DNA of 25,515 nt, from assembly GCA_002269645.1 (NCBI GenBank), contig NIVC01005125.1:1-25515 (forward strand), written 5' to 3'. The notes under the pieces are model-generated. The model was not told where the DNA came from, made no database searches, and was given only the letters and a program-made list of their open reading frames with translations. Shown here one piece after another: positions 1,894-23,990 of the stretch (within the stretch, counting starts at the first letter, position 1; every line of letters starts with the position of its first letter). The translations under genes were made by a program, and so were the position numbers. The stretch is from Macrostomum lignano. Taxonomy: Eukaryota.

Positions 1894-3044
1894 GGAGAGT
1901 GGAAATAGAGAAGAGTGGAGAGGGAGAAGGGTGGAGAGGGAGAAGGGTGGAGAGGGAAAAGGGTGGAGAGGGAGAAGGGTGGAGAGGGAGAAGGGTGGAG
2001 AGGGAGATGGGTGGGAGGGAGATGGGTGGGAGGGAGATAGGTGGAGAGGGAGATGGGTGGGAGGGAGATGGGTGGAGAGGGAGATGGGTTGAGAGGGAGA
2101 TGGGTTGAGAGGGAGAAGGGTGGAGAGGGAGAAGGGTGGGAGGGAGATGGGTGGAGAGGGAGATGGGTGGAGAGGAAGATGGGTTGAGAGGGAGATGGGT
2201 GGAGAGGAAGATGGGTTGAGAGGGAGAAGGGTGGAGAGGGAGAAGGGTGGGAGGGAGATGGGTTGAGAGGGAGAAGGGTGGAGAGGGAGAAGGGTGGGAG
2301 GGAGATGGGTGGAGAGGGAGATGGGTGGGAGGGAGATGGGTGGAGAGGGAGAAGGGTGGAGAGGAAGATGGGTGGAGAGGAAGATGGGTGGAGAGGGAGA
2401 TGGGTGGGAGGGAGATGGGTGGGAGGGAGATGGGTGGGAGGGAGATGGGTGGGAGGGAGATGGGTGGGAGGGAGATGGGTGGAGAGGGAGAAGGGTGGAG
2501 AGGAAGATGGGTGGAGAGGGAGATGGATTGAGAGGGAGAAGGGTGGAGAGGGAGATGGGTGGGAGGGAGATGGGTGGAGAGGAAGATGGGTGGGAGGGAG
2601 ATGGGTGGAGAGGGAGAAGGGTGGAGAGGGAGATGGGTGGGAGGGAGATGGGTGGGAGGGAGATGGGTGGGAGGGAGAAGGGTGGAGAGGGAGATGGGTG
2701 GGAGGGAGATGGGTGGAGAGGGAGATGGGTGGGAGGGAGATGGGTGGAGAGGGAGATGGGTGGGAGGGAGATGGGTGGGAGGGAGATGGGTGGAGAGGGA
2801 GATGGGTGGGAGGGAGATGGGTGGGAGGGAGATGGGTGGGAGGGAGATGGGTGGAGAGGGAGATGGGTTGAGAGGGAGAAGGGTGGAGAGGAAGATGGGT
2901 GGAGAGGAAGATGGGTTGAGAGGGAGAAGGGTGGAGAGGAAGATGGGTGGAGAGGGAGATGGGTTGAGAGGGAGAAGGGTGGAGAGGAAGATGGGTGGGA
3001 GGAAGATGGGACGGTGGGAAAAGGGTGGGAAAGAGGTGGATGGT
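1894..3044. repeat. G/A-rich minisatellite of mixed 15/16-bp units (GGGTGGAGAGGGAGA[T/A], GGGTGGGAGGGAGAT), about 70 units
   Basis: Seen directly. The + strand has no C between 1894 and 3011. It explains all the P/S/H/L-rich and G/R/E/W-rich ORFs in the track at 1701-3111. Confidence 0.97.
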
Positions 3045-3597
3045 AGTACATGTAAACATACTCGTACTGTTTAGTGGAAGCAATCAATATATTGTTTAGA
3101 AATGCCAGCAATTGAATCGAAATCCAATCCGGCTAATCCGCGGGGCTATTGAGGTAATCGTTGGGTATGTTCTGAACTTGTTTCTTGTGTTTCCTTGACA
3201 ACAGTAAGTCAGTTTTGAGTTTCAATCAATCACTTGGCCAATGCAAAGAAATCTTGTTGTAATTGTGTCGCAGGCTGCATGTCTGGCATCTGAGTTGAGT
3301 GCACACATTTGCCTGGCAACGAGTGCCTTAAGGTGCTCAAAGATTTTCTTTTAGCTCGTACCCAAAATGCAGTCTGCTTGGAAAGGCGCTCGCCTTAACA
3401 ACTAATTGGCAGGCTAGAAAGGCAGACGGTCCCTAATTGCTTCTTTTGTTCGTAAAAAAATTACCGCGATTGGGAAGCTGTCAATTCTTCAAGTGGAGAT
3501 CAGACAGCGGCACTGGGGAGTGAAAGGGGTCGACGTGTGAGGCAGTGAGACAGTGAAATTGCTAGGTAGAGAATGCATGCAGGAGAGAACAGTTATG

Positions 3598-4044
3598 GAC
3601 TGAGTAGGGACTCGGGAGAGACTGAGCAGAGACTCAGGACAGACTGAGTAGAGACTCAGGAGAGATTGAGTAGACTCAGGAGAGATTGATTAGACTCAGG
3701 AGAGACTGAGCAGAGACTCAGGAGAGATTGAGTAGACTCAGGAGAGATTGAGTAGACTCAGGAGAGATTGATTAGACTCAGGAGAGATTGAGTAGACTCA
3801 GGAGAGATTGAGTAGACTCAGGAGAGATTGAGTAGACTCAGGAGAGATTGAGTAGACTCAGGAGAGACTGAGCAGAGACTCAGGAGACACTGAGCAGACT
3901 CAGGAGAGATTGATTAGACTCAGGAGAGACTGAGCAGATACTCAGGAGAGATTGAGTAGACTCAGGAGAGACTGAGCAGAGACCCAGGAGAGACTGAGAC
4001 GAAATCCAAGAGAAACTTAGGAGAAGCTCAAAGAGACTCAGCAG
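3598..4044. repeat. 20/22-bp minisatellite (GACTCAGGAGAGATTGAGTA / GAGACTCAGGAGAGACTGAGCA), about 20 units
   Basis: ACTCAGG recurs every 20-22 bp from about 3632 to 3966, and both ends of the array are degenerate. Confidence 0.95.
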
Positions 4045-6028
4045 ATTTGAATGAATGATAAAATTGAAGCTCGTTAAAGAGAAGCTTAACTAATCCCTGT
4101 GGATTGGCGCCAAAGCCAGTTGAGCTGCAAGTGACAAACTCCCGTTTAACGGGAAGCAGAATCCAGCTAATGCCGAGGGGATGCAGTGAAATGGTGTGGT
4201 AAAAATCGGATTAAAGGATTACTCTGAAGTATTTTTTGACGAGCCGGATTCGAGCTCAATAAAAATTCACTTTTATAATCTCGGAAGAAAAGGAAAATCA
4301 ATTGGAGATATCAATTGGCAAGCAATATGTAATGAGGTGGCCCATGAACTGATGCTCACTCTCACCTTGCCATCTGCCGGTGGTTAACAATGTCATTTAT
4401 TTGCATCTTCAGAGCAGGCTTATCTGAAATTTCTTTGGCAGAAAGGAACTGCCCGCATGGTGTGCTGTTGTGATGCATTATGATTAAGCGGCAGTGGGAC
4501 ATGCATAATTCATGCCAAATAATGCACGCATTAGAGCAAACTGGGGAGGTCTATGGGAGCTCCCATCTCCATCGGCTCTCCTGGGGGAGGCAGAGGATGG
4601 CTATGAAGTCTAAAAGCCTTCATGAATTAGTGCATGCGTACAGACACTCAACCAGACACTCAAGCGACGGGGAGACCCCAATAGAACTGAGTCAAAGTCA
4701 CCGGGTTGCGATTGAAATTTTCAGCATTTTCAAATACATCGGATGACCAGACAGTGGCTGGTTCCATGTAATCCGCCTTGCTGAACTTCAATTCCAGGGA
4801 GCAACATAGCTAGCTGCTGGTGACACAAGCACCAGAAGACCTTCCTAGAGGCTCTCCTAGAGCCTGTCGTCCAGGGCCTAGCGTAATGATTTCATTGGAG
4901 CAAACTCTGAGATTTTGTTCGTAAATTATACCATACTTATTATTACATGTACATGCAGTTTTTCAGATTCCTTTGAAAGACAAAGGCGACAAGGGCACAT
5001 CTCGACAGTGCAGCTGTATTATTTTCTCAAGGCACACAGATGCTTACAGTGTTGATCTGTCCCTTCACCTTGAGCGATACAAGAGTTGACAAAGAAGCTA
5101 CAACATACCGTGTAGTCTTTTTGGCTGAGCAGAAAGGAAAGAATAAACATGAAATTAGACACTGCGCATCTCAGCTAGGAATAGCACAGAATTCAGTCAA
5201 TTCCTTGGCCAACTGATATGCTGTTTATGTTTCCATCTCCAGTATCTGGCTTCTACGTGCATCAGGCATGGGTATCAAGGTCCCAACTGCTGAGAAAGTA
5301 TTGCAGATAATGAGGCATGCTCAATACAGGTAGCACATCATACATACCCTGTGGCGACAAAACTTTTATTGACTTTCTGAAAACAGTCGATCCGCTGAGC
5401 TCAGACAGGCTGGAAACGTTTTTTGACTCGTTTTTGAATGCTCGAACTGACTGACACCTGGGGATAAAAGGCCACAAAGGGCTGACTCAAAGGGGTGAGT
5501 CAAAGCAGGTGTTTTCATGTATAGGGGGATAAGAAAGACTTTGCAGCCACACCAATCTGCAACATCGAATGCACAGAGAAGAGGACAAAGGATGCTGGAG
5601 AAGCTGGAGGTGAGTCGGGGAAATTCTCCCCTTGGCTAGCGGTAAACACACGGGAATTCGATGAGTGCACGCAGGCCGCCTTTCCTCGGCTTTGAGAGCG
5701 GCAGGCTCTGCCCCTCCCCCGAGCATAGGCTCCAGTCGCAATCGATCTGAAAATGTCCCTAAAGACTGACAGGGAGAAGAAGGGACGCTTCTTCTAGTGG
5801 AAATCCCATCTACGCCTCTCTGTTTCTCTGACGAGGACAAAAGACGGTTTGGCACAATCAAGCCTTGCAGCGTTAGGGAGCTTACGTGCGCTTTGACTCC
5901 GCCACAGCCTTCGCCATGATTAGAAAGACTGAATAATCTCGCCATTATCAAAATTAGTTCCCTTTGCTTCTCCTTCGTTTGATAAGGACGTTTTGTTAGG
6001 CTTGTTTAGCTAATTTTTCGTCTAAATT

Positions 6029-6725
<697 letters not shown>

Positions 6726-7697
6726 ACGAGTAGTAAGTGGAAGTCTAGAGTCTGTTAACCCCGAAATCCCACAGTCAGAAAGTGAGAGAGCGTAGAGTTT
6801 CTTCTCTCCGCTTCTCACTGTCGAAGCGGTGGCTTTTGATCTGTGCCTCAGAAAAAGTGTCCCATTCAGCGCCAAATTTAGCAGCTCTGCAATCCACCCG
6901 GGCGGTCATCAGGGTGATGAATAGCGGAAATGAGTTCACACTGCTTCTGCGATTCCTGCCAGAATTGCTGGCGGCAGCATTGATAAAGAGAAGCTCACAG
7001 AGACCATCTCTTTCTTTCCGTTCTGTTCCAGCCACGTGCTATTGTATTCCCGATCAAGCACTTGCTGGAAATTAGGCGAGTAAACTTGGAATATTTAGGA
7101 GTCGCTGTTCACGGGACAATCCCAATCTATTCTCCGACAGGCTCAGAACAATTTTGAAAACTCATTCAAGAGACCCAACGGGATCTCTTAGTAAACAAAC
7201 GCATACCGGCCTCACCTCAATGTCTACTCGCACAAGCTCTGCTTTGAAGCATTGAAATGTCAGTCTTAAGTCAGCTGTAGATCCATCAAAGGGAACAGGG
7301 GCCTTTGTGTTTGTTCCTTTCTATTCTTCGTTGGCTCGTATTACTTGCGTAATAATTACCAAACCTGATTTATGTCTAAACTCGTTTATACTTCTCTGAG
7401 TTAGACTCAGCGACAGGTATTGTTTGCTGTGATTCCTCTATACATGTAGGCTTTTCTGCTATTGAGCGCAAACATTTTTGTAGGCTTCACATTCCTATGA
7501 GTGCGTGAGGTTCAAGGCACAAAAAGAATTCCTCTATTCAGTTCAGCTACGCTTCTGCAAGTTTGAAACGGAAATGCAATTACCAGCGCATCTCCTGGAC
7601 AAATCAATCTTGTGTACTCAGCTCCCTGCAGTCATTGTCGCTAACCCCACGGATTGATTGGCCAGCCCCATTTCACCCTATTGAACTCGGCCTTTAG

Positions 7698-8175
7698 CCA
7701 GTGCACCAAGCTCAAGCATAGTAAGAGAGAGCGAGACAGAGAGTAGACAAGCGGAGATCGCCAGGACCCTCCCTTCTCCCAGCTGGCTCTCAGTGAGTCG
7801 CCAGGTCGCAGCCATTCTGAGCGTACCTTTGCTAAGGGGCCACGACGAGAGCGGTCCCCAGGCGCCGGGCCTGCAAACCGGCTCAGCTATTTTCAGAGAC
7901 CGCACCCGCGGCTCCTCCGTCTCCGGATTGCCATCTGCGTCCTCGCCGGGGTCTGCAGCGCTCGGCGGACGGCCCGGTCGGTCGTGGTCGGCCGCAGTCG
8001 GCGGAAGCAGCGGAATCGGTGGCGGTGGAGTCGGCGAAGAGGACTGGGAGGTGCGGATCGGCCGACCAAAGGATCAGTCGGTGGGATTCTTTGCCGCCAA
8101 CGAGAGCAGCCTCGGGGCGCCGGTGGTGGAGGCGGTGGCTTTGATGACAGCGACGAAGAAGAACGCTTGGTGAAG
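7698..8175 (+). CDS. Probable 5' coding exon(s) of the ligand-gated ion channel gene (low-complexity Ser/Gly-rich N-terminus); exact structure unresolved
   Basis: GC/CpG-rich block with an acceptor CCTTTAG at 7697. It ends ...GGGFDDSDEEERLVK at AAG|GCAAGT (8175/8176, GC-type donor), which joins in phase 0 to RQVYICVVF at 8726. Reading through the block needs either a +1 base near the G-run at 8114-8117 or an intron at 7793-7896. A candidate start is ATG A|GTGCGT at 7497-7500. Confidence 0.5.
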
Positions 8176-8725
8176 GCAAGTGCTTGTACATGTACTGCTT
8201 TACTATTCCTTGGAGTCAATTTAGTGCATGCGAGTTAAACGACTATTCCAAAATGCTCATATGTAAGTGTGGATTTTCCAAACCAATTCCTGGGATATCA
8301 TTATTATGCTGTACATAGATGTTTATACTTCCTATAGCTTACATTACATTCTTGAGTATTGTAACAGTTTATGTAAATTGACGTCATTTGTTGCACACTC
8401 GGCACTCCGATGCAAAAAATACGCTACGTATGTGCTTTTTAAAGAAGTTTTCTTTATTAGTCTTGGAATACACACACAAGGAGCACTGTAGTACATAACA
8501 GGATGTAAAACTCAATGATCGAGTAATTTTTTGAAGGCCACTTTCTTGGAAAAATACACTGTGGAGATAGGAAAAAATTATCTTCACATAATCACTTATT
8601 GAGTTATACCACAGTGGTCTTTGTCAGTTGTCGCAAGACCAGGTTTCTTCGGCTAGGTACAGTAGTATAGCTTGTCATGTTCCTCGCAACTGGCTCACTA
8701 CTTCATCCGCCCTTACGTTCTTCAG

Positions 8726-11700
8726 CGCCAGGTGTACATCTGCGTAGTTTTCATGAAGATCGGCGAGATAGACACCATCAAGGAGCAGTTCGCAGCGGAT
8801 GTTCTAATCAAGGCCAAGTGGCGGGAGCCCGACCTGGACCACAAAAACATCCAACAGGGCAGGCTGGTGAGAAGCGAGCCTTTCTTCGAAAATCTTAGTA
8901 CAGAACACAGTAAAGTTGAAGCGCAAGAGGTGAACAGTTGAACTTTCCTAGAAATACTATTGATTTCCCTCTTGCAGCGCTAAACATATATAAGGAATGG
9001 CATGTCATAAGCGCTAGCGACAAAAATACATAGCATTTTTTCAGTCTTGCCAATTCTTAAGTCTCTATCTATAGTCTCTGCTCTGCAAGTAGTGACAGAT
9101 TGTAATAACAATACAAGTGTATCTACGAAATGCGATACAATATTTTATTTGAGTCAAAACTATTTTTACTCAGTTCAACCTGCGGATGCCTTCTAGCCTA
9201 GCTAGACGCTCTATTTTTCCCAATCCCAATCCTAATCTCGAAATCCGAAAAATCTACAGAGCTACACATCAAATTAGGCCATGATTAGTCAGGGTGGAAT
9301 ATGCTATTAAATGGCATAAATCGATCAGATTTCCATTTCTGACACACAAGTCGCTGGATCGCCTAAAATCGCAAATCACGCAATCTAATTTGGCTTTGCA
9401 TGCGGCAAAGCTAATTTTCAGAGCTGCCGTGGGTGAGGCGAAATAATAACAAAAAAGTCGCGTAAACGTTTCTAATCGATAAACTCTCGCTGGTTGCATA
9501 GCTTATAAGCTTTAAATGAATTTATTCAATCAGACAGTGGTAAACAATTTTTTACTTTGAATTTCAACATCATATACTGTTCTCAACATTCTAGGACTAC
9601 GACTGGTCAAAAAGTTGGACCCCGAAGCTGTACATTGAGAACACTATCGGAGAAGGCAAGGAGCAGGTCTACCAGATGATTTCATTCAATGAAGTTGGTC
9701 ACGCCTTCCTATTTGAAAAGCGGCGCGTCTCGGGCGTTTTCCTGGAAAATCTGGAGCTCAACCACTTCCCGTTTGATGTTCAGGTAAATGCATGAAGCCA
9801 GCACGATGGCTTGTTGGCCGAATAAGAGCTTTTGCATGAAATCGACGGGATCTCTCTGAGAGGCTGTGCGCCTTTTTAAATCTGCTCACACGCCTACTCG
9901 GGGAGTATCCTAATATTTGCGTGGCAAACGCACGAGTCCGTGTGTTCTTAAGACGTTCTGTGCCCTGTTTCTGTGAAGGTGGATATAAAAGATGCGATGA
10001 ATCCGTGTACCCATTACCCTCCCATTGGCATGATATCCGGGCTGGATGCTGCCTAGATGGAATGCTAGCTGAGTGAGCAGCAGAGTACTCCAACCCTCAA
10101 GTAAAAGAGCAGATGAGAAGTGGCATTAGCAACCTTACATGTATTTCTGGCGAGAACAACTAGAGATGGATAGTGGACAGTGGAAATGCGCATTTTTTAG
10201 GTTCATTGTATGCATTAAAATTAAATGTGACACAAAATTTGCGCAAATAGAATAGAAAATGAGCTTTCACTACATTTATAGACAAAAATCATGCTGACCT
10301 ACTTAAAGTAATCAGTAGTTTTTTATATCTTCAAGGACCTGACAATAACGGTGGCATCAAATCTGTCCTCAGCCGAGATTCGCCTGGTCAACGATCCCGA
10401 CGAGCCCCACCGGATTAACAAACAGTCGTTTGTTGGTGAGGAATTAAAACTCAGTGAATTAATTCTTCGTTGACTTCCGCTATAAAAAGCCGCTGAAATT
10501 GAATAGTTAGCATTACAATTTTTGTTTGAAATCTACAACTAAGGATATAAACCAGATAAACCCGGAAGTTTTTTGACTACGAACGGAATATTCATCAGTC
10601 TTTTAAAAATTCCACTAAGGTCTAACAAAGATAAAAAACACTGAACTTCTCCAATCAACGCCTTAGACGAACAGGAGTGGTTTCTGTACAAGCACATCGA
10701 CACGGAGCAGCGAGAGCTGGCCTGCGAGTACGCGGACCAGAGCTCCACCCGGCCTGCGCTGTCCGTGAAGTGTCGCGCCGCTCGAAGACCAGCTTATTTT
10801 ATCTGGAATATTTTCCTCGTCACGGTGAGTAGAAGTGCTCCTTCTACTTTTGCTTCAAGTGCTTACCCTCTGACACTACATACAAATTCCATATTTGTAT
10901 GAAGTTCAACCACTATTGAGTTCAGACTGAAGAAAAGTTTGAGTTATTTACAGGTCCATTTTGTTGCGCAAAAAGCGTAAGCCAACAACTGTTCGATATG
11001 TTTTTATTTAATTATATTGCTTGATACTTTTCAATCCATTAACTTCGTTAAAATTCAGTGATGAAAATGAAAAGTTTCGTGTCGCTTATGCATTTTGCAA
11101 CTGAAACGCACCTGTCATCGTTAAAGTTTGCTTGATTCGCAGTAGGACTCACATGTTAATTGGCAAGCTCGTATACCATAATACAACAGTACCACAATTG
11201 TTGCCAAACTCACCTTACCAATGCTTTCTATCAACGCCAACAGTTCCTCATCTGCTCCTTGTCGTTGGTAACCTTCGCAGTGAAGAGGGACCTGCCGCAG
11301 AACCGATTGCAGCTGACGTTCACATTGGTGCTCACGCTGGTAGCATTCAAATTTGTGGTGAACCAATGCTTGCCAAAGATTTCTTATCTCACGTATCTGG
11401 TAAGTTTTTTCGTGCACAGATAGCTCATAGCATCTAACAAGCTTTAAGATACGTGTTACATCATTGTGTTAAGCTTGGTGCAATTGTATTGTTGTATAAT
11501 ATAATAATAATTGTTTATACCTGCCCTAATGGGCACATGTGCAACCTACAACAGCCGCAGCTATTGCGCGGCGCATCTAAGGCTACATACGGCTGTTCAG
11601 TGCAAGTACTGGGGGGTCGCCACACACCCTTAATTACATCAGCTAATGCTGGCACCCATTTTACAGCTGGGTGAGCTGAAGCAATGCATGCAAAGTTACA

Positions 11701-12841
11701 GGTAAGTGTCTTGCTCGAGGGCACAAATTGTTTCGAGTGGATCGAGAATCAAACCCCCGACAGTTTAGTCATGAGCCTGATGCTCTAACCACTAGGCAAA
11801 CCACTCATTTTGCATTGTTGCATGAAATTGGAATGTTGTGCTACGATTATTGCAAGTACAAGCCTTATAGGAAATGTCAATAGCAACAGAAAGCAATTTA
11901 AAACTGCAGGACAAGTACGTGATCAGCAGCCTGTTCATTCTGACGCTAATCTGTCTGTGGCACGGTCTAATTGTGGTCATTGACAAGATCATCCTCGAAC
12001 AGTTTGGCATGGTGTGGGACAGTCTGGAAACTTACGTAATCATTGGCATGGCATTCAGCTATGTTGCCTATAACGTTGGCTTTGTCATCATGATTTTTTG
12101 CGTGGTAAGCTCGCACGGTGGAGCGGTCTTGTCACTGGAATGTACTAAGTAAAATAGAATAATGTGCTCAAAGCTGGAAGCCTAAAAATACTACCTAAAT
12201 AAAGTCGTTCGTTTAAATTCGATGAAAAACAATATAACACTTTACAGGCCTGCAAGAGGCGACGAATAATGAAGCAGAAGGACAAGGAATACACGGTGAG
12301 CAAGCCTCAATACGATATTGCACCTACCAGCGCCTAAAGTGCTAAGTTGGGCAGCTTTTACGAGCGTAACTTTTTAAAAGACAAACTCTGTCAATTTTAC
12401 AATTTTACAGTCGTCCTCTTTTACAATCTAAATTTGCCCAACAATACAATAGTTTTGCATAAAAATGTTTAATGATTTAACTTTGTACTCGTAATTAATG
12501 TCTACTTCCTCCATATCCGGTTTGATCGCAAGAGGCTCCAATGCAGAAGTTCCGATTAAACGGTCCCCAGCTTGCTAGCTCGTAGCTTGCTGGTTATAAT
12601 GCAGAGAAGATATTCTCCCTTTTTATATCGCTTTTATCCTTTTTATAGCACCGGGTGAAGAGTTTTCAGCGCTATCAAAAAGTAATGTAGACTCGCAATA
12701 GCTAACCTCGTATATTTTCAGGAGCGAGTGAAAATGCAGGTGCGGTCCAAGGGAATGCGAACTAAACGGATGCTACAACAGACTCAGCTGCTACACGAGG
12801 TCAAGGAGAATGGGCAGTCCACGGCGGTTGCGTTCATTTGA
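8726..12841 (+). CDS. Cys-less pentameric ligand-gated ion channel subunit (Pro-loop receptor; neurotransmitter-gated ion channel superfamily)
   Basis: Exons 8726-8866, 9595-9783, 10336-10435, 10667-10824, 11244-11399, 11910-12104, 12248-12295 and 12722-12841 (TGA). All seven introns between them are GT-AG and in phase, giving 368 aa. Hallmarks: KIGEIDT..F.ADV.I...WREP, W.PKLYIEN, LELNHFPFDVQDL (Pro-loop), EQEW, ARRPAYFIWNIF (pre-M1), M2 RLQLTFTLVLTLVAF, LPKISYLTYLDKY (M2-M3), and four hydrophobic segments. Confidence 0.93.
11496..11806 (-). mobile_element. tRNA-derived SINE, antisense in a channel intron
   Basis: The minus strand reads an A-box-like TGGTTTGCCTAGTGGTTAG (+ 11785-11803) and a B-box-like GGTTTGATTCTC (+ 11744-11755). 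These are followed by GTGCCCTCGAGCAAGACACTT and CACCCAGCTGTAAAATGGGTGCC, motifs I recognise from conserved central domains of animal SINEs, and then an (ATT)n-like tail at about 11496-11511. Confidence 0.75.
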
Positions 12842-22230: not shown

Positions 22231-23990
22231 ATGTCTGACTGGCTTGCTTCATCTGGTGTGTCGAACCGTGATGATTTGGTCTACATGGCTAAGCTTGCCG
22301 AGCAGGCCGAACGATATGATGACATGGCAGCTGCTATGAAGTCTGTAACAGAGAAGGGACAAGAGCTTGGAAACGAAGAAAGGAACTTGCTTTCTGTGGC
22401 CTACAAGAACGTCGTTGGTGCCAGACGTTCTTCATGGAGGGTTATTTCCAGCATTGAGAGCAAGACCGAAGGCCATGAAAGGAAACAGTCCACTGCAAAA
22501 GAATATCGTCAGAAGATTGAAGCTGAACTTCAAAAAGTATGCAAGGAAGTACTGGTAAGTAGGCCTATAGAAACGGCATTATGACTATATTCTCTACTTT
22601 ACTTTTCGCTCACATTTAGACCATAAAGTATTTATTGATGTAATTTTAATTTCTCTTAAAATTAACCATTGATAATGGCATTGTATTAATTTAATAAGTT
22701 ATAAATTATAAAGTAATACATAGTAGATACATATATTTAATTATGGCTATTATATCAATACTATATATAGTATAGTACATTGTATTAATATATAACTAGC
22801 AACTTACTCAGAAAACTGTCATCTATTTTTAGCTTAGTTCAACCTAGACAGCATCTTAAAAAAAACAAATATCTACTTGAAAGGTATCTTTTTTTGTATC
22901 ATTATGATTAATATATTTTTACAACTATATTTATATTTATTTAAATATTTATTATATATTTTAGTTTTATATGTATTTGATAGGGCCTAATGTAAACATT
23001 AATGTATAATATTTATAATAATTAATACTTATCAAAAAATGAATAATGATTGATAGGCTGTTCTATTAGTAGTATTAAATTTAATAACTCATTTTTAGAT
23101 TAAGAATCTTGATTATATGTCTATAACAATTTCTATTCTATTTAATATTATATATTATCAAATATATATATTAACCAAAAATAAACCTTTCTCTAGCTAA
23201 TAAATGTTGTTGTGACTTATATGCTTTATACAAAGAAAATAGACTATATCAAAATCATTTTCCTATCTTTAAAGACTGAAAAAATAGCCTTTTGTAATAA
23301 AACAAGTATTATCATTACTATGCATTATATTTAACATTTGTATAACTTATCTATCATTTTCTTTCATTTTGTAGAATCTGCTTGATGACTTTCTGATCAA
23401 GCAAGCTTCTACCCCAGAGTCGAAGGTCTTCTACTACAAGATGAAAGGTGATTATTACCGTTATCTGGCTGAAGTTGCCACTGGTGATGAGCGCAAGGAT
23501 GTCATTGACCAGTCTGAGGGTGCCTACAAGGCTGCCACTGAGCATGCTGAGTCTGAGCTGCCAACCACTCATCCAATTCGGCTTGGCCTGGCCCTCAACT
23601 ACTCTGTTTTCTTCTATGAAATCAAGAGTGAATCTGACAAGGCCTGCCAGCTGGCAAAGAAGGTAAATGAGGCTAATATATTAGCAATTTGATTGTCTCC
23701 TCAACTAGCTGGCAAGTAGCTAAGCTATTAATCAAACCACTCGTCTGATTTCCAGGCCTTTGACAATGCAATCGCCGACTTGGATGAAATTGGCGAGGAT
23801 TCCTACAAGGATTCGACACTCATTATGCAGCTCCTGCGAGACAACCTGACTGTAGGTTTACTCCATCTATTACATGGTGTTTTGCTGTACACTTCAGTGT
23901 TTTAAATAACTTTATTTGTATTTGAAACCTACTCCATTTTAGCTGTGGACATCTGAGCAAGGCGGAGAAGACGGAGAGCAGGATCAGTAA
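22231..23990 (+). CDS. YWHAZ: 14-3-3 protein, zeta-like (non-epsilon), 251 aa
   Basis: Exons 22231-22554, 23375-23662, 23756-23851 and 23943-23990 (TAA), all GT-AG and phase 0. Signatures [58 protein letters not shown] and [21 protein letters not shown]. The phosphopeptide-binding K, R, R and Y (zeta K49, R56, R127, Y128) are intact. Confidence 0.98.

Follow-up and report, generated by a model that had tools for sequence, protein, structure and literature searches.

A Cys-less pentameric channel subunit from Macrostomum lignano and a proposed inverted topology for its clade

Introduction

On which side of the membrane does the ligand-binding domain of a pentameric ligand-gated ion channel, or pLGIC, lie when the subunit appears to lack a signal peptide and gathers its basic residues on the ligand-binding side of its membrane helices? 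The question is raised by a gene with its recognisable coding exons at 8726-12841 of a stretch of Macrostomum lignano DNA (contig NIVC01005125.1, assembly GCA_002269645.1), the whole 25,515 nucleotides of which we call the window. An extracellular ligand-binding domain is part of the pLGIC description from bacteria to humans. A preliminary description of this locus proposed the reverse, namely an inside-out channel whose ligand-binding domain lies in the cytosol and which would answer to an intracellular ligand or do its work on an organelle. The oddities on which that proposal was built read, across the sequences compared here, as signatures of a whole family rather than as the quirks of one gene, and a subunit with both termini in the cytosol (N-in/C-in) is the best-supported and most economical reading of them, to which we give a probability of roughly 60%.

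The clade itself is already known. A metazoan Cys-less Pro-loop clade was described by Jaiteh, Taly and Henin in 2016 (PMC4795631) and again, for schistosomes, by Johnson et al. in 2023 (PMC9874803). Its members lack both Cys-loop cysteines as well as the second Cys-loop, and they group with lophotrochozoan or flatworm sequences rather than with the GABA/Gly or nACh clades; planarian gabrg1 and gabrg2 are among them. The genes of the clade number in the hundreds and are spread over flatworms, molluscs, annelids, nemerteans, rotifers, brachiopods, amphioxus and echinoderms. Its function is still listed as unknown in a 2026 preprint, and the literature searched holds no functional characterisation of any member. 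Nor did literature searches return a relevant paper on pLGICs that are inverted, keep the ligand-binding domain in the cytosol or lack a signal peptide, and term searches of the partial text of PMC4795631 and PMC9874803 found no mention of an absent signal peptide, a reversed charge bias, the post-M4 motif or inversion. New, as far as those searches reach, are the proposed inversion of the clade and the signatures that support it.

Identity of the subunit

Sequence and predicted fold identify the window gene as a subunit of a pLGIC and a new member of the bilaterian Cys-less/Pro-loop clade, clade membership being judged from similarity matches. Eight plus-strand coding exons can be rebuilt, all with canonical GT-AG splice sites and consistent phases, for a total of 368 residues (Table 1). 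Pfam profile Neur_chan_LBD (PF02931) recognizes the product at 7.2e-10 (39.1 bits, against a cut-off of 26), and Neur_chan_memb (PF02932), spanning M1-M3 only, matches at 1.6e-4 with 22.5 bits, below its 28.1-bit gathering cut-off. An AlphaFold2 model of the window protein, which is partial and starts at β1, was computed from a 38-sequence alignment and has a mean predicted local distance difference test score (pLDDT) of 86.9 and a predicted template-modelling score (pTM) of 0.77. It consists of a β-sandwich, with strands within residues 2-183, and four helices at residues 186-208, 214-238, 245-276 and 281-359. The third of these takes in the last part of the M2-M3 loop, M3 itself and the first part of the linker; the fourth runs unbroken from the linker across M4 into the tail, and the block-mean pLDDT is 86-93 over residues 301-340 and 67 or lower beyond. 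Foldseek matches the model to GABA-A, GlyR and sTeLIC structures with probability 1.0. The best match by sequence among solved structures is bacterial ELIC (2e-17; GlyR, 2e-11), to which the M2 and M2-M3 sequences align.

The Pro-loop LENLELNHFPFDVQDLT keeps the [FY]PxD motif (HFPFDVQ at 9766-9783, with F105, P106 and D108 invariant in the family) and carries L and D/L at the two positions where a strict Cys-loop has its disulfide cysteines, 13 residues apart and flanking FPxD. The lack of a Cys-loop disulfide that the preliminary description had reported is thus borne out. The same loop is Cys-less in all 150 of the best profile matches that include it, from a profile search of 1.84 billion cluster representatives that gave 611 at E <= 1e-30; Branchiostoma and Holothuria proteins are among the named members of the clusters sampled. 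Of a separate set of 247 homologues, the 120 that score best are without exception spiralian and Cys-less (E <= 1e-83), and the closest matches among those 120, with 50-77% identity, come from flatworms, molluscs, annelids and nemerteans. The window protein is 73-77% identical to the cestode and monogenean orthologues and has kept all residues that are invariant in the family.

Absence of a signal peptide

As judged from sequence, an N-terminal signal peptide is absent throughout the family, although the first exon of the window gene itself was not found. To each protein we assigned the score of the most hydrophobic 10-residue Kyte-Doolittle window within the first 45 residues of all that precedes β1, and called an N-terminus signal-like at 2.0 or above. 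As controls, 120 ELIC-like bacterial pLGICs and 120 vertebrate α7 subunits were gathered, of which 80 and 102 were scored. The bacterial control has a median of 2.39, with 57/80 signal-like, and the α7 control a median of 2.50, with 87/102. The closest relatives of the window protein, on the other hand, have a median of 1.06 (4/90 at or above threshold) and the wider clade one of 0.68 (1/79), so that a signal-peptide-like hydrophobic stretch occurs in 5 of 169 complete family N-termini. A transmembrane-like 19-residue window upstream of the ligand-binding domain is seen in four family sequences in all. The claim of the preliminary description that a clear signal peptide is missing thus holds across the orthologues, the window gene's own first exon not having been located.

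The few hydrophobic N-termini that were examined by eye (P0055, P0064 and P0010/P0011) appear to be annotation artefacts: they look like AT-rich leader sequence that has been translated, an outdated gene model, or a stretch of poly-Ala missing from other isoforms. The lone high scorer of the wider clade is P0241, with a 10-residue window of 3.43. Three RNA-derived contigs with uninterrupted open reading frames have their nearest in-frame stop 16, 28 and 119 codons upstream of the called ATG. Because stops lie only 16 and 28 codons upstream in two of them, the N-termini of at least those two are complete, and neither has a signal sequence.

One subfamily has, in the family alignment, a conserved amphipathic, helix-like N-terminal segment ahead of β1, exemplified by ERLIEAIESLRDTISDNT and carried by P0067, P0073, P0084, P0097, P0106, P0120, P0075, P0117 and P0055. 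It is too weakly hydrophobic for a signal peptide.

Charge distribution and the basic tail

In the closest relatives, the 15 residues before M1 hold on average 4.5 K+R and 0.01 D/E, and the first 15 residues after M4 hold 5.2 K+R. Between these flanks, the M1-M2 loop (including the 0' position) has a mean of 1.8 K+R, the M2-M3 loop 2.0, and the M3-M4 linker 1.6 with 2.8 D/E. On this count, K+R favors the side of the ligand-binding domain, with a bias of +8.3 for the closest relatives and of +6.2 for the wider clade; every family sequence has a positive value, the minima being +2 and +1, respectively. The corresponding values for the controls are -0.8 (ELIC-like) and +0.06 (α7, for which only the 15-residue flanks of the 155-residue M3-M4 loop were taken). 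In both controls, too, the pre-M1 flank is more basic than the M1-M2 loop (~3 vs ~1), from which it follows that in canonical receptors it is the signal peptide that forces the N-terminus out.

A short, acidic M3-M4 linker and a long, helical and strongly basic post-M4 tail are conserved family-wide in the alignments and the model. The linker has a median length of 12-15 residues, with means of 1.6-1.8 K/R and 2.8-2.9 D/E; the tail has a median of ~50 residues (51) with ~14 K/R, compared with median tail lengths of 0 in the ELIC-like proteins and 15 in α7. In the window protein, the preliminary description had reported a net acidic linker and a basic tail directly after M4. Both hold: the linker DKIILEQFGMVWDSLET has 1 K against 4 D/E, the 32 residues quoted have 14 K/R against 3 D/E, and the whole tail, ACKRRRIMKQKDKEYTERVKMQVRSKGMRTKR through to a terminal TAVAFI, is 55 residues long with 15 K/R against 5 D/E.

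Over 192 complete sequences, the post-M4 motif is [KR][KR]RRxMxxKD[KR]EY, with R318 in 140/192, D325 in 130/192 and Y328 in 112/192. Its conservation extends across flatworms, molluscs, annelids, nemerteans and rotifers; in amphioxus and a sea cucumber, the versions are also basic but match it more loosely. On the other flank, the pre-M1 sequence C-R-A-A-R-R-P, or C[RH]A[AS]RRP as a motif, is essentially invariant in alignments of 26 and 38 diverse members. The window protein carries both of these proposed clade signatures, as ACKRRRIMKQKDKEY and KCRAARRP. A Cys adjoins the juxtamembrane KRRR in 50/192 sequences. The RRx[ST] signal in the tails is weak: 20 occurrences where 4.8 would be expected among the closest relatives, and 3 where 2.4 would be expected across the wider clade.

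The extreme C-termini differ from lineage to lineage and are conserved within them, many mollusc proteins ending in [KT][SA]KY and rotifer proteins in FRxGS[LI]GC. Several annelid proteins have RRxST.LLH near the end, which QQTQLLHEV in the window echoes. PDZ-ligand C-termini were considered and set aside as unconvincing, 12 of 69 distinct ends fitting any class.

Sequons, cysteines and long M3-M4 loops

The family ligand-binding domain contains 0.30 N-x-S/T sequons per domain against 0.88 expected from shuffled sequences, and no sequon column is conserved, the maximum being 3% of the 192 family sequences. The α7 control has 1.87 against 1.05 expected, and five Cys. The lone conserved Cys of the family's ligand-binding domain is the pre-M1 position 179 (72% of sequences), which has no partner. 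The N-L-S sequon that the preliminary description had entered against its own proposal does exist, in exon 10336-10435, but it is not shared even by the cestode orthologues. That description had also named a signal peptide and a glycosylated N-terminal domain as findings that would tell against inversion; in silico, neither is seen, the orthologues lacking signal peptides and the ligand-binding domain lacking any sign of glycosylation.

A mainly flatworm subfamily has M3-M4 loops of 60-170 residues (P0094, P0120, P0123-P0127, P0134, P0140, P0158 and P0212). In 15 long-loop members, the loops contain 43 sequons against 24 expected and the ligand-binding domains 6 against 8.7. We regard this as suggestive but weak evidence for inversion, the sequences being related and of low complexity. 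Pfam searches of 10 long proteins for fused cytosolic domains in their N- and C-terminal extensions gave nothing informative; the one DUF4706 match, in a 408-residue tail, may be a gene-fusion artefact.

The proposed inverted topology and its alternatives

The N-in/C-in reading is favored because the absence of a signal peptide, the positive bias toward the ligand-binding side, the lack of a conserved sequon or disulfide, and the conserved basic tail motif all point the same way when taken together. We also lean, somewhat less firmly, toward the broader proposal that the whole bilaterian Cys-less clade consists of inside-out channels, in which the ancestral topology flipped when the signal peptide was lost, since the flanks of M1 favor a cytosolic N-terminus even in canonical receptors, and in which the ligand-binding domain became a cytosolic sensor for some messenger or metabolite inside the cell. 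Of the human multipass proteins with a cytosolic N-terminus, 89% have an even number of transmembrane domains according to one census, which also reports that a signal sequence typically precedes large exoplasmic N-terminal domains (PMC13220792).

Mechanistically, loss of the signal peptide alone could suffice to turn M1, with its strongly basic upstream flank KCRAARRP, into a signal anchor with a cytosolic N-terminus (type II). The subunit would then insert upside-down relative to every characterised pLGIC, with the β-sandwich domain, the M2-M3 loop and the C-terminal tail in the cytosol, and the M1-M2 loop and M3-M4 hairpin exposed to the exterior or to the lumen of an organelle. What the M3-M4 loop does in the cytosol for canonical receptors would fall to the basic helical tail; the tail's KRRR might bind anionic lipids, the adjacent Cys might be palmitoylated, and the RRxS/T sites might be phosphorylated. 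Gating would proceed from the cytosol, in the plasma membrane or in an organelle. The gating interface itself is nearly invariant in the family (the β1-β2 loop KxGEIDTxKE, the Pro-loop, the pre-M1 Arg and the M2-M3 sequence LPKISYLTYLDKY), and we therefore expect gating like that of other pLGICs, with the sidedness swapped. The sequence tests all favor the N-in/C-in part of the inside-out proposal made in the preliminary description; its other part, gating by a cytosolic ligand or work on an organelle, we purely infer.

Several considerations weigh against an inverted subunit. The topology evidence is all statistical prediction by crude measures of our own, not by SignalP or DeepTMHMM, and the hydropathy test leaves 15-29% of the controls undetected, these being either true signal peptides or mis-annotated starts. 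No upstream first exon was found by homology, using tblastn with seven orthologues. The M1-M2 loop, which would lie outside, has an invariant 0' Arg and often one or two further K/R (KRDLPQNR in the window), a basic loop to which the preliminary description had rightly drawn attention as counter-evidence. In the flatworm subfamily, M3-M4 loops of 100-170 residues end in a basic amphipathic helix resembling the MA helix that canonical receptors have in the cytosol, which is seen before M4 in both of the loops read whole (P0094 and P0120). In rare cases, a eukaryotic protein does bring an N-terminal domain of some size across the membrane with no cleavable signal, and the ligand-binding domain evolved as an extracellular sensor. 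To our knowledge, no cytosolic ligand has been identified for the family. Finally, RNA interference of planarian homologues produces neuronal and behavioral phenotypes, which an ordinary receptor would explain equally well (PMC9874803).

The main rival, unlikely in our estimation, is a canonical orientation in which the ligand-binding domain is outside, as in every known pLGIC, having been translocated without a cleavable signal and with M1 acting as a reverse signal anchor or with the help of another factor. The basic helical tail might then be an extracellular appendage that runs along the ligand-binding domain and binds acidic matrix, lipid head groups or a partner, or it might be cleaved by a proprotein convertase at KRRR. 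The KRRR sequence does fit a furin-type site, but two residues from the bilayer such a site would be hard to reach. The homology to receptors whose ligand-binding domain is known to be outside, the conserved gating interface, the basic M1-M2 loop, whose 0' Arg is invariant just as canonical channels have it, the MA-like helix ahead of M4 in long-loop members, and the neuronal phenotypes of planarian homologues under RNA interference (PMC9874803) all sit comfortably with this orientation. Set against them is what it demands: signal-less translocation of a folding domain of 200-800 residues whose membrane-proximal flank has ~4.5 K/R and essentially no D/E, and a K+R bias of +6 to +8 that would break the positive-inside rule in all 192 sequences. 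Such a ligand-binding domain would also be exposed without a conserved sequon or disulfide, and in the ELIC-like controls, which share the architecture, signal peptides are present and the tail is missing.

Much less probable is that the peculiarities are products of annotation, with a signal-peptide exon systematically missed, or with the tail exons unused and a read-through end just after M4 (FCVVSSHGGAVLSLECTK, then a stop). The first exon of the window gene was, to be sure, found neither by homology nor in the exon listing, the Spirometra P0002 and Cichlidogyrus P0003 models do end in post-M4 read-through, and some database N-termini, such as P0055 and P0064, are clearly mis-predicted. Yet ~170 independent complete models from many phyla, including RefSeq isoforms and RNA-derived contigs, are without a signal peptide; the contigs have a single uninterrupted reading frame, two of them with an in-frame stop 16-28 codons upstream (the third, 119). 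The tail motif is conserved across phyla, moreover, and the tail exons of the window have canonical splice sites in the right phase. Least credible is a decaying or non-functional paralogue with functionally meaningless oddities, for which the unfound first exon might speak, since eight exons remain in frame with canonical splice sites, every invariant residue is kept at 73-77% identity to the cestode and monogenean orthologues, and the features are common to hundreds of conserved genes.

Gene model and other features of the window

The window DNA is eukaryotic, with short exons and GT-AG introns, and its features are collected in Table 1. Every exon border, those of both small tail exons included, is reproduced by tblastn with cestode, monogenean, nemertean and other orthologues. 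In such searches, exon 8726-8866 has 79% identity to cestode proteins, its FxKxGEIDTxKE columns being invariant across the family alignment, and exon 9595-9783 has 81-83% identity to flatworm proteins. C179, A181, R183, R184 and P185 of exon 10667-10824 are likewise invariant. The final three exons (11910-12104, 12248-12295 and 12722-12841) are all phase 0 with GT-AG borders. Exon 12248-12295 has 80-87% identity to Sparganum and Tubulanus proteins, the Sparganum protein matching at 12248-12292 (ACKRRRDMKSKDSEY) with 80%, and the Mesocestoides tail YLERIKCQMKKKGIRQHRT matches 12689-12784 with E = 0.003.

Table 1. Coordinates of the exons, protein segments and other features in the window
Feature	Position	Strand	Content	Borders and remarks
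Minisatellite, 1.1 kb	1908-3028		16/32-bp units (GAGATGGGTGGAGAGG), ~70 copies, 91% identity	one strand has G without C (GC skew 1.0); long spurious open reading frames on both strands
Tandem repeat, 20 bp	3609-4045		GACTCAGGAGAGATTGAGTA, ~19-21 copies	
Microsatellite	6030-6710		(ATAC)n, ~170 copies	
GC-rich block	7700-8170	+	GC 0.50-0.52 vs ~0.42 around	~0.5 kb upstream of first recognisable pLGIC exon
Coding exon	8726-8866	+	β1-β2 of ligand-binding domain, RQVYICVVFMKIGEIDTIKEQFAADVLIKAKWREPDLD...	AG/GT borders, phase 0
Coding exon	9595-9783	+	loop A (WTPKLYIEN) to Cys-less Pro-loop LENLELNHFPFDVQ	
Coding exon	10336-10435	+	DLTITVASNLSSAEIRLVNDPDEPHRINKQSFV; holds N-L-S sequon	ends in phase 1
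Coding exon	10667-10824	+	last β strands, basic pre-M1 SVKCRAARRP, first half of M1	
Coding exon	11244-11399	+	second half of M1, M1-M2 loop KRDLPQN, M2 RLQLTFTLVLTLVAFKFVV, M2-M3 loop LPKISYLTYL	
tRNA-derived look, by eye	~11718-11805	-	box-A/box-B-like TAGTGGTTAGAGC ... GGTTTGATTCTCG	in intron 6
Start of exon 11910-12104 ("exon 7")	11910-11981	+	DK, then M3 YVISSLFILTLICLWHGLIVVI at 11916-11981	
M3-M4 linker	11982-12032	+	DKIILEQFGMVWDSLET, 17 residues; 1 K vs 4 D/E	
M4	12033-12104	+	YVIIGMAFSYVAYNVGFVIMIFCV	GT donor at 12105
Coding exon, 16 codons	12248-12295	+	juxtamembrane post-M4 signature ACKRRRIMKQKDKEYT	ttacag/GCC...ACG/gtgagc
Last coding exon	12722-12841	+	remaining basic tail ERVKMQVRSKGMRTKRMLQQTQLLHEVKENGQSTAVAFI	acceptor ttttcag/GAG; stop TGA 12839-12841
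Open reading frame, 14-3-3	22231-22584	+	N-terminal part of 14-3-3 protein (MSDWL...)	Pfam 14-3-3 1.6e-34, profile positions 1-92 of 223

For the missing start of the gene, the sole ATG-started, phase-0 exon with a good donor within 3000-8725 is 5517-5609, which has no hydrophobic stretch and is a candidate only. The in-frame Met at 8753 (MKIGEID) was rejected as the main start, since it would cut into β1. The GC-rich block ahead of the first recognisable exon may be a promoter or a 5' exon; by tblastn it has no homology to orthologue N-termini, and it holds no ATG-started, phase-0 exon with a good donor that would splice to 8726. At the other end, reading through beyond the M4 donor (12105-12152) gives FCVVSSHGGAVLSLECTK and a stop. 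The two database models that end likewise just past M4, Spirometra P0002 (...CVVS) and Cichlidogyrus P0003 (...CVVSQLLYP), make such ends either annotation errors or a tail-less isoform.

Elsewhere in the window, the 14-3-3 reading frame is probably the first coding exon of a neighboring gene. The stretch of tRNA-derived appearance in intron 6 is possibly a short interspersed element (SINE); tRNA and Rfam scans (ARAGORN, Rfam), which included it, were negative.

Significance and comparison with known systems

If the inversion is true, it would be the first in the pLGIC superfamily and would create a new channel class, one whose ligands act inside the cell. The case would show how a single loss, that of a signal peptide, can re-purpose a receptor fold, and, if ligands have so far been applied only from the outside, it could also be why the function of the clade is still called unknown. 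The hunt for ligands of Cys-less receptors would turn to candidates from the cytosol and to inside-out patches. Vertebrates lack the family, which parasitic flatworms possess, and its use as an anthelmintic target has been proposed (PMC9874803); for that use, it matters which face bears the binding site. Should the inversion fail, the family would still be notable for pLGICs that have no signal yet bring a large domain with basic flanks to the far side of the membrane, contrary to the positive-inside rule.

The nearest known systems are the metazoan Cys-less receptors (PMC4795631 and PMC9874803). Like the window protein, these have an FPFD loop without cysteines and lack a second Cys-loop, and the taxonomic spread, with amphioxus and echinoderms in it, agrees. 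We see no structural difference from them.

ELIC resembles the family in that it, too, is without the cysteines of the Cys-loop, its M3-M4 linker is likewise very short (median 16 residues in ELIC-like proteins vs 12-15), and there is no N-terminal helix, as far as the partial window model starting at β1 extends. The likeness ends at the N-terminus, signal-like in 57/80 ELIC-like proteins but in only 5/169 of the family, and in the distribution of charge: the ELIC-like linker has ~4 K/R vs 1.6 in the animal family, while after M4 the ELIC-like proteins have a median tail of 0 with 0.12 K/R, as opposed to ~50 residues with 14 K/R. Unlike ELIC/GLIC-type prokaryotic pLGICs, the window gene is eukaryotic, has introns, and encodes a 55-residue tail.

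With GlyR, GABA-A and nAChR α7 receptors, the window protein shares the fold (Foldseek probability 1.0, TM-score 0.6-0.7), the 9' Leu and 6' Thr of M2 (counted from the 0' Arg), the LPxxSYxxxxDxY M2-M3 loop and the pre-M1 Arg. These canonical receptors differ from the family in having a cleavable signal peptide (signal-like in 87/102 α7 subunits), a Cys-loop disulfide, conserved sequons, a long cytosolic M3-M4 loop (~155 residues) and a short, non-basic C-terminus (15 residues). If inverted, the family would join the cyclic-nucleotide-gated channels and the IP3 and ryanodine receptors in placing its sensing domain in the cytosol, a likeness that would be one of functional analogy, with no homology.

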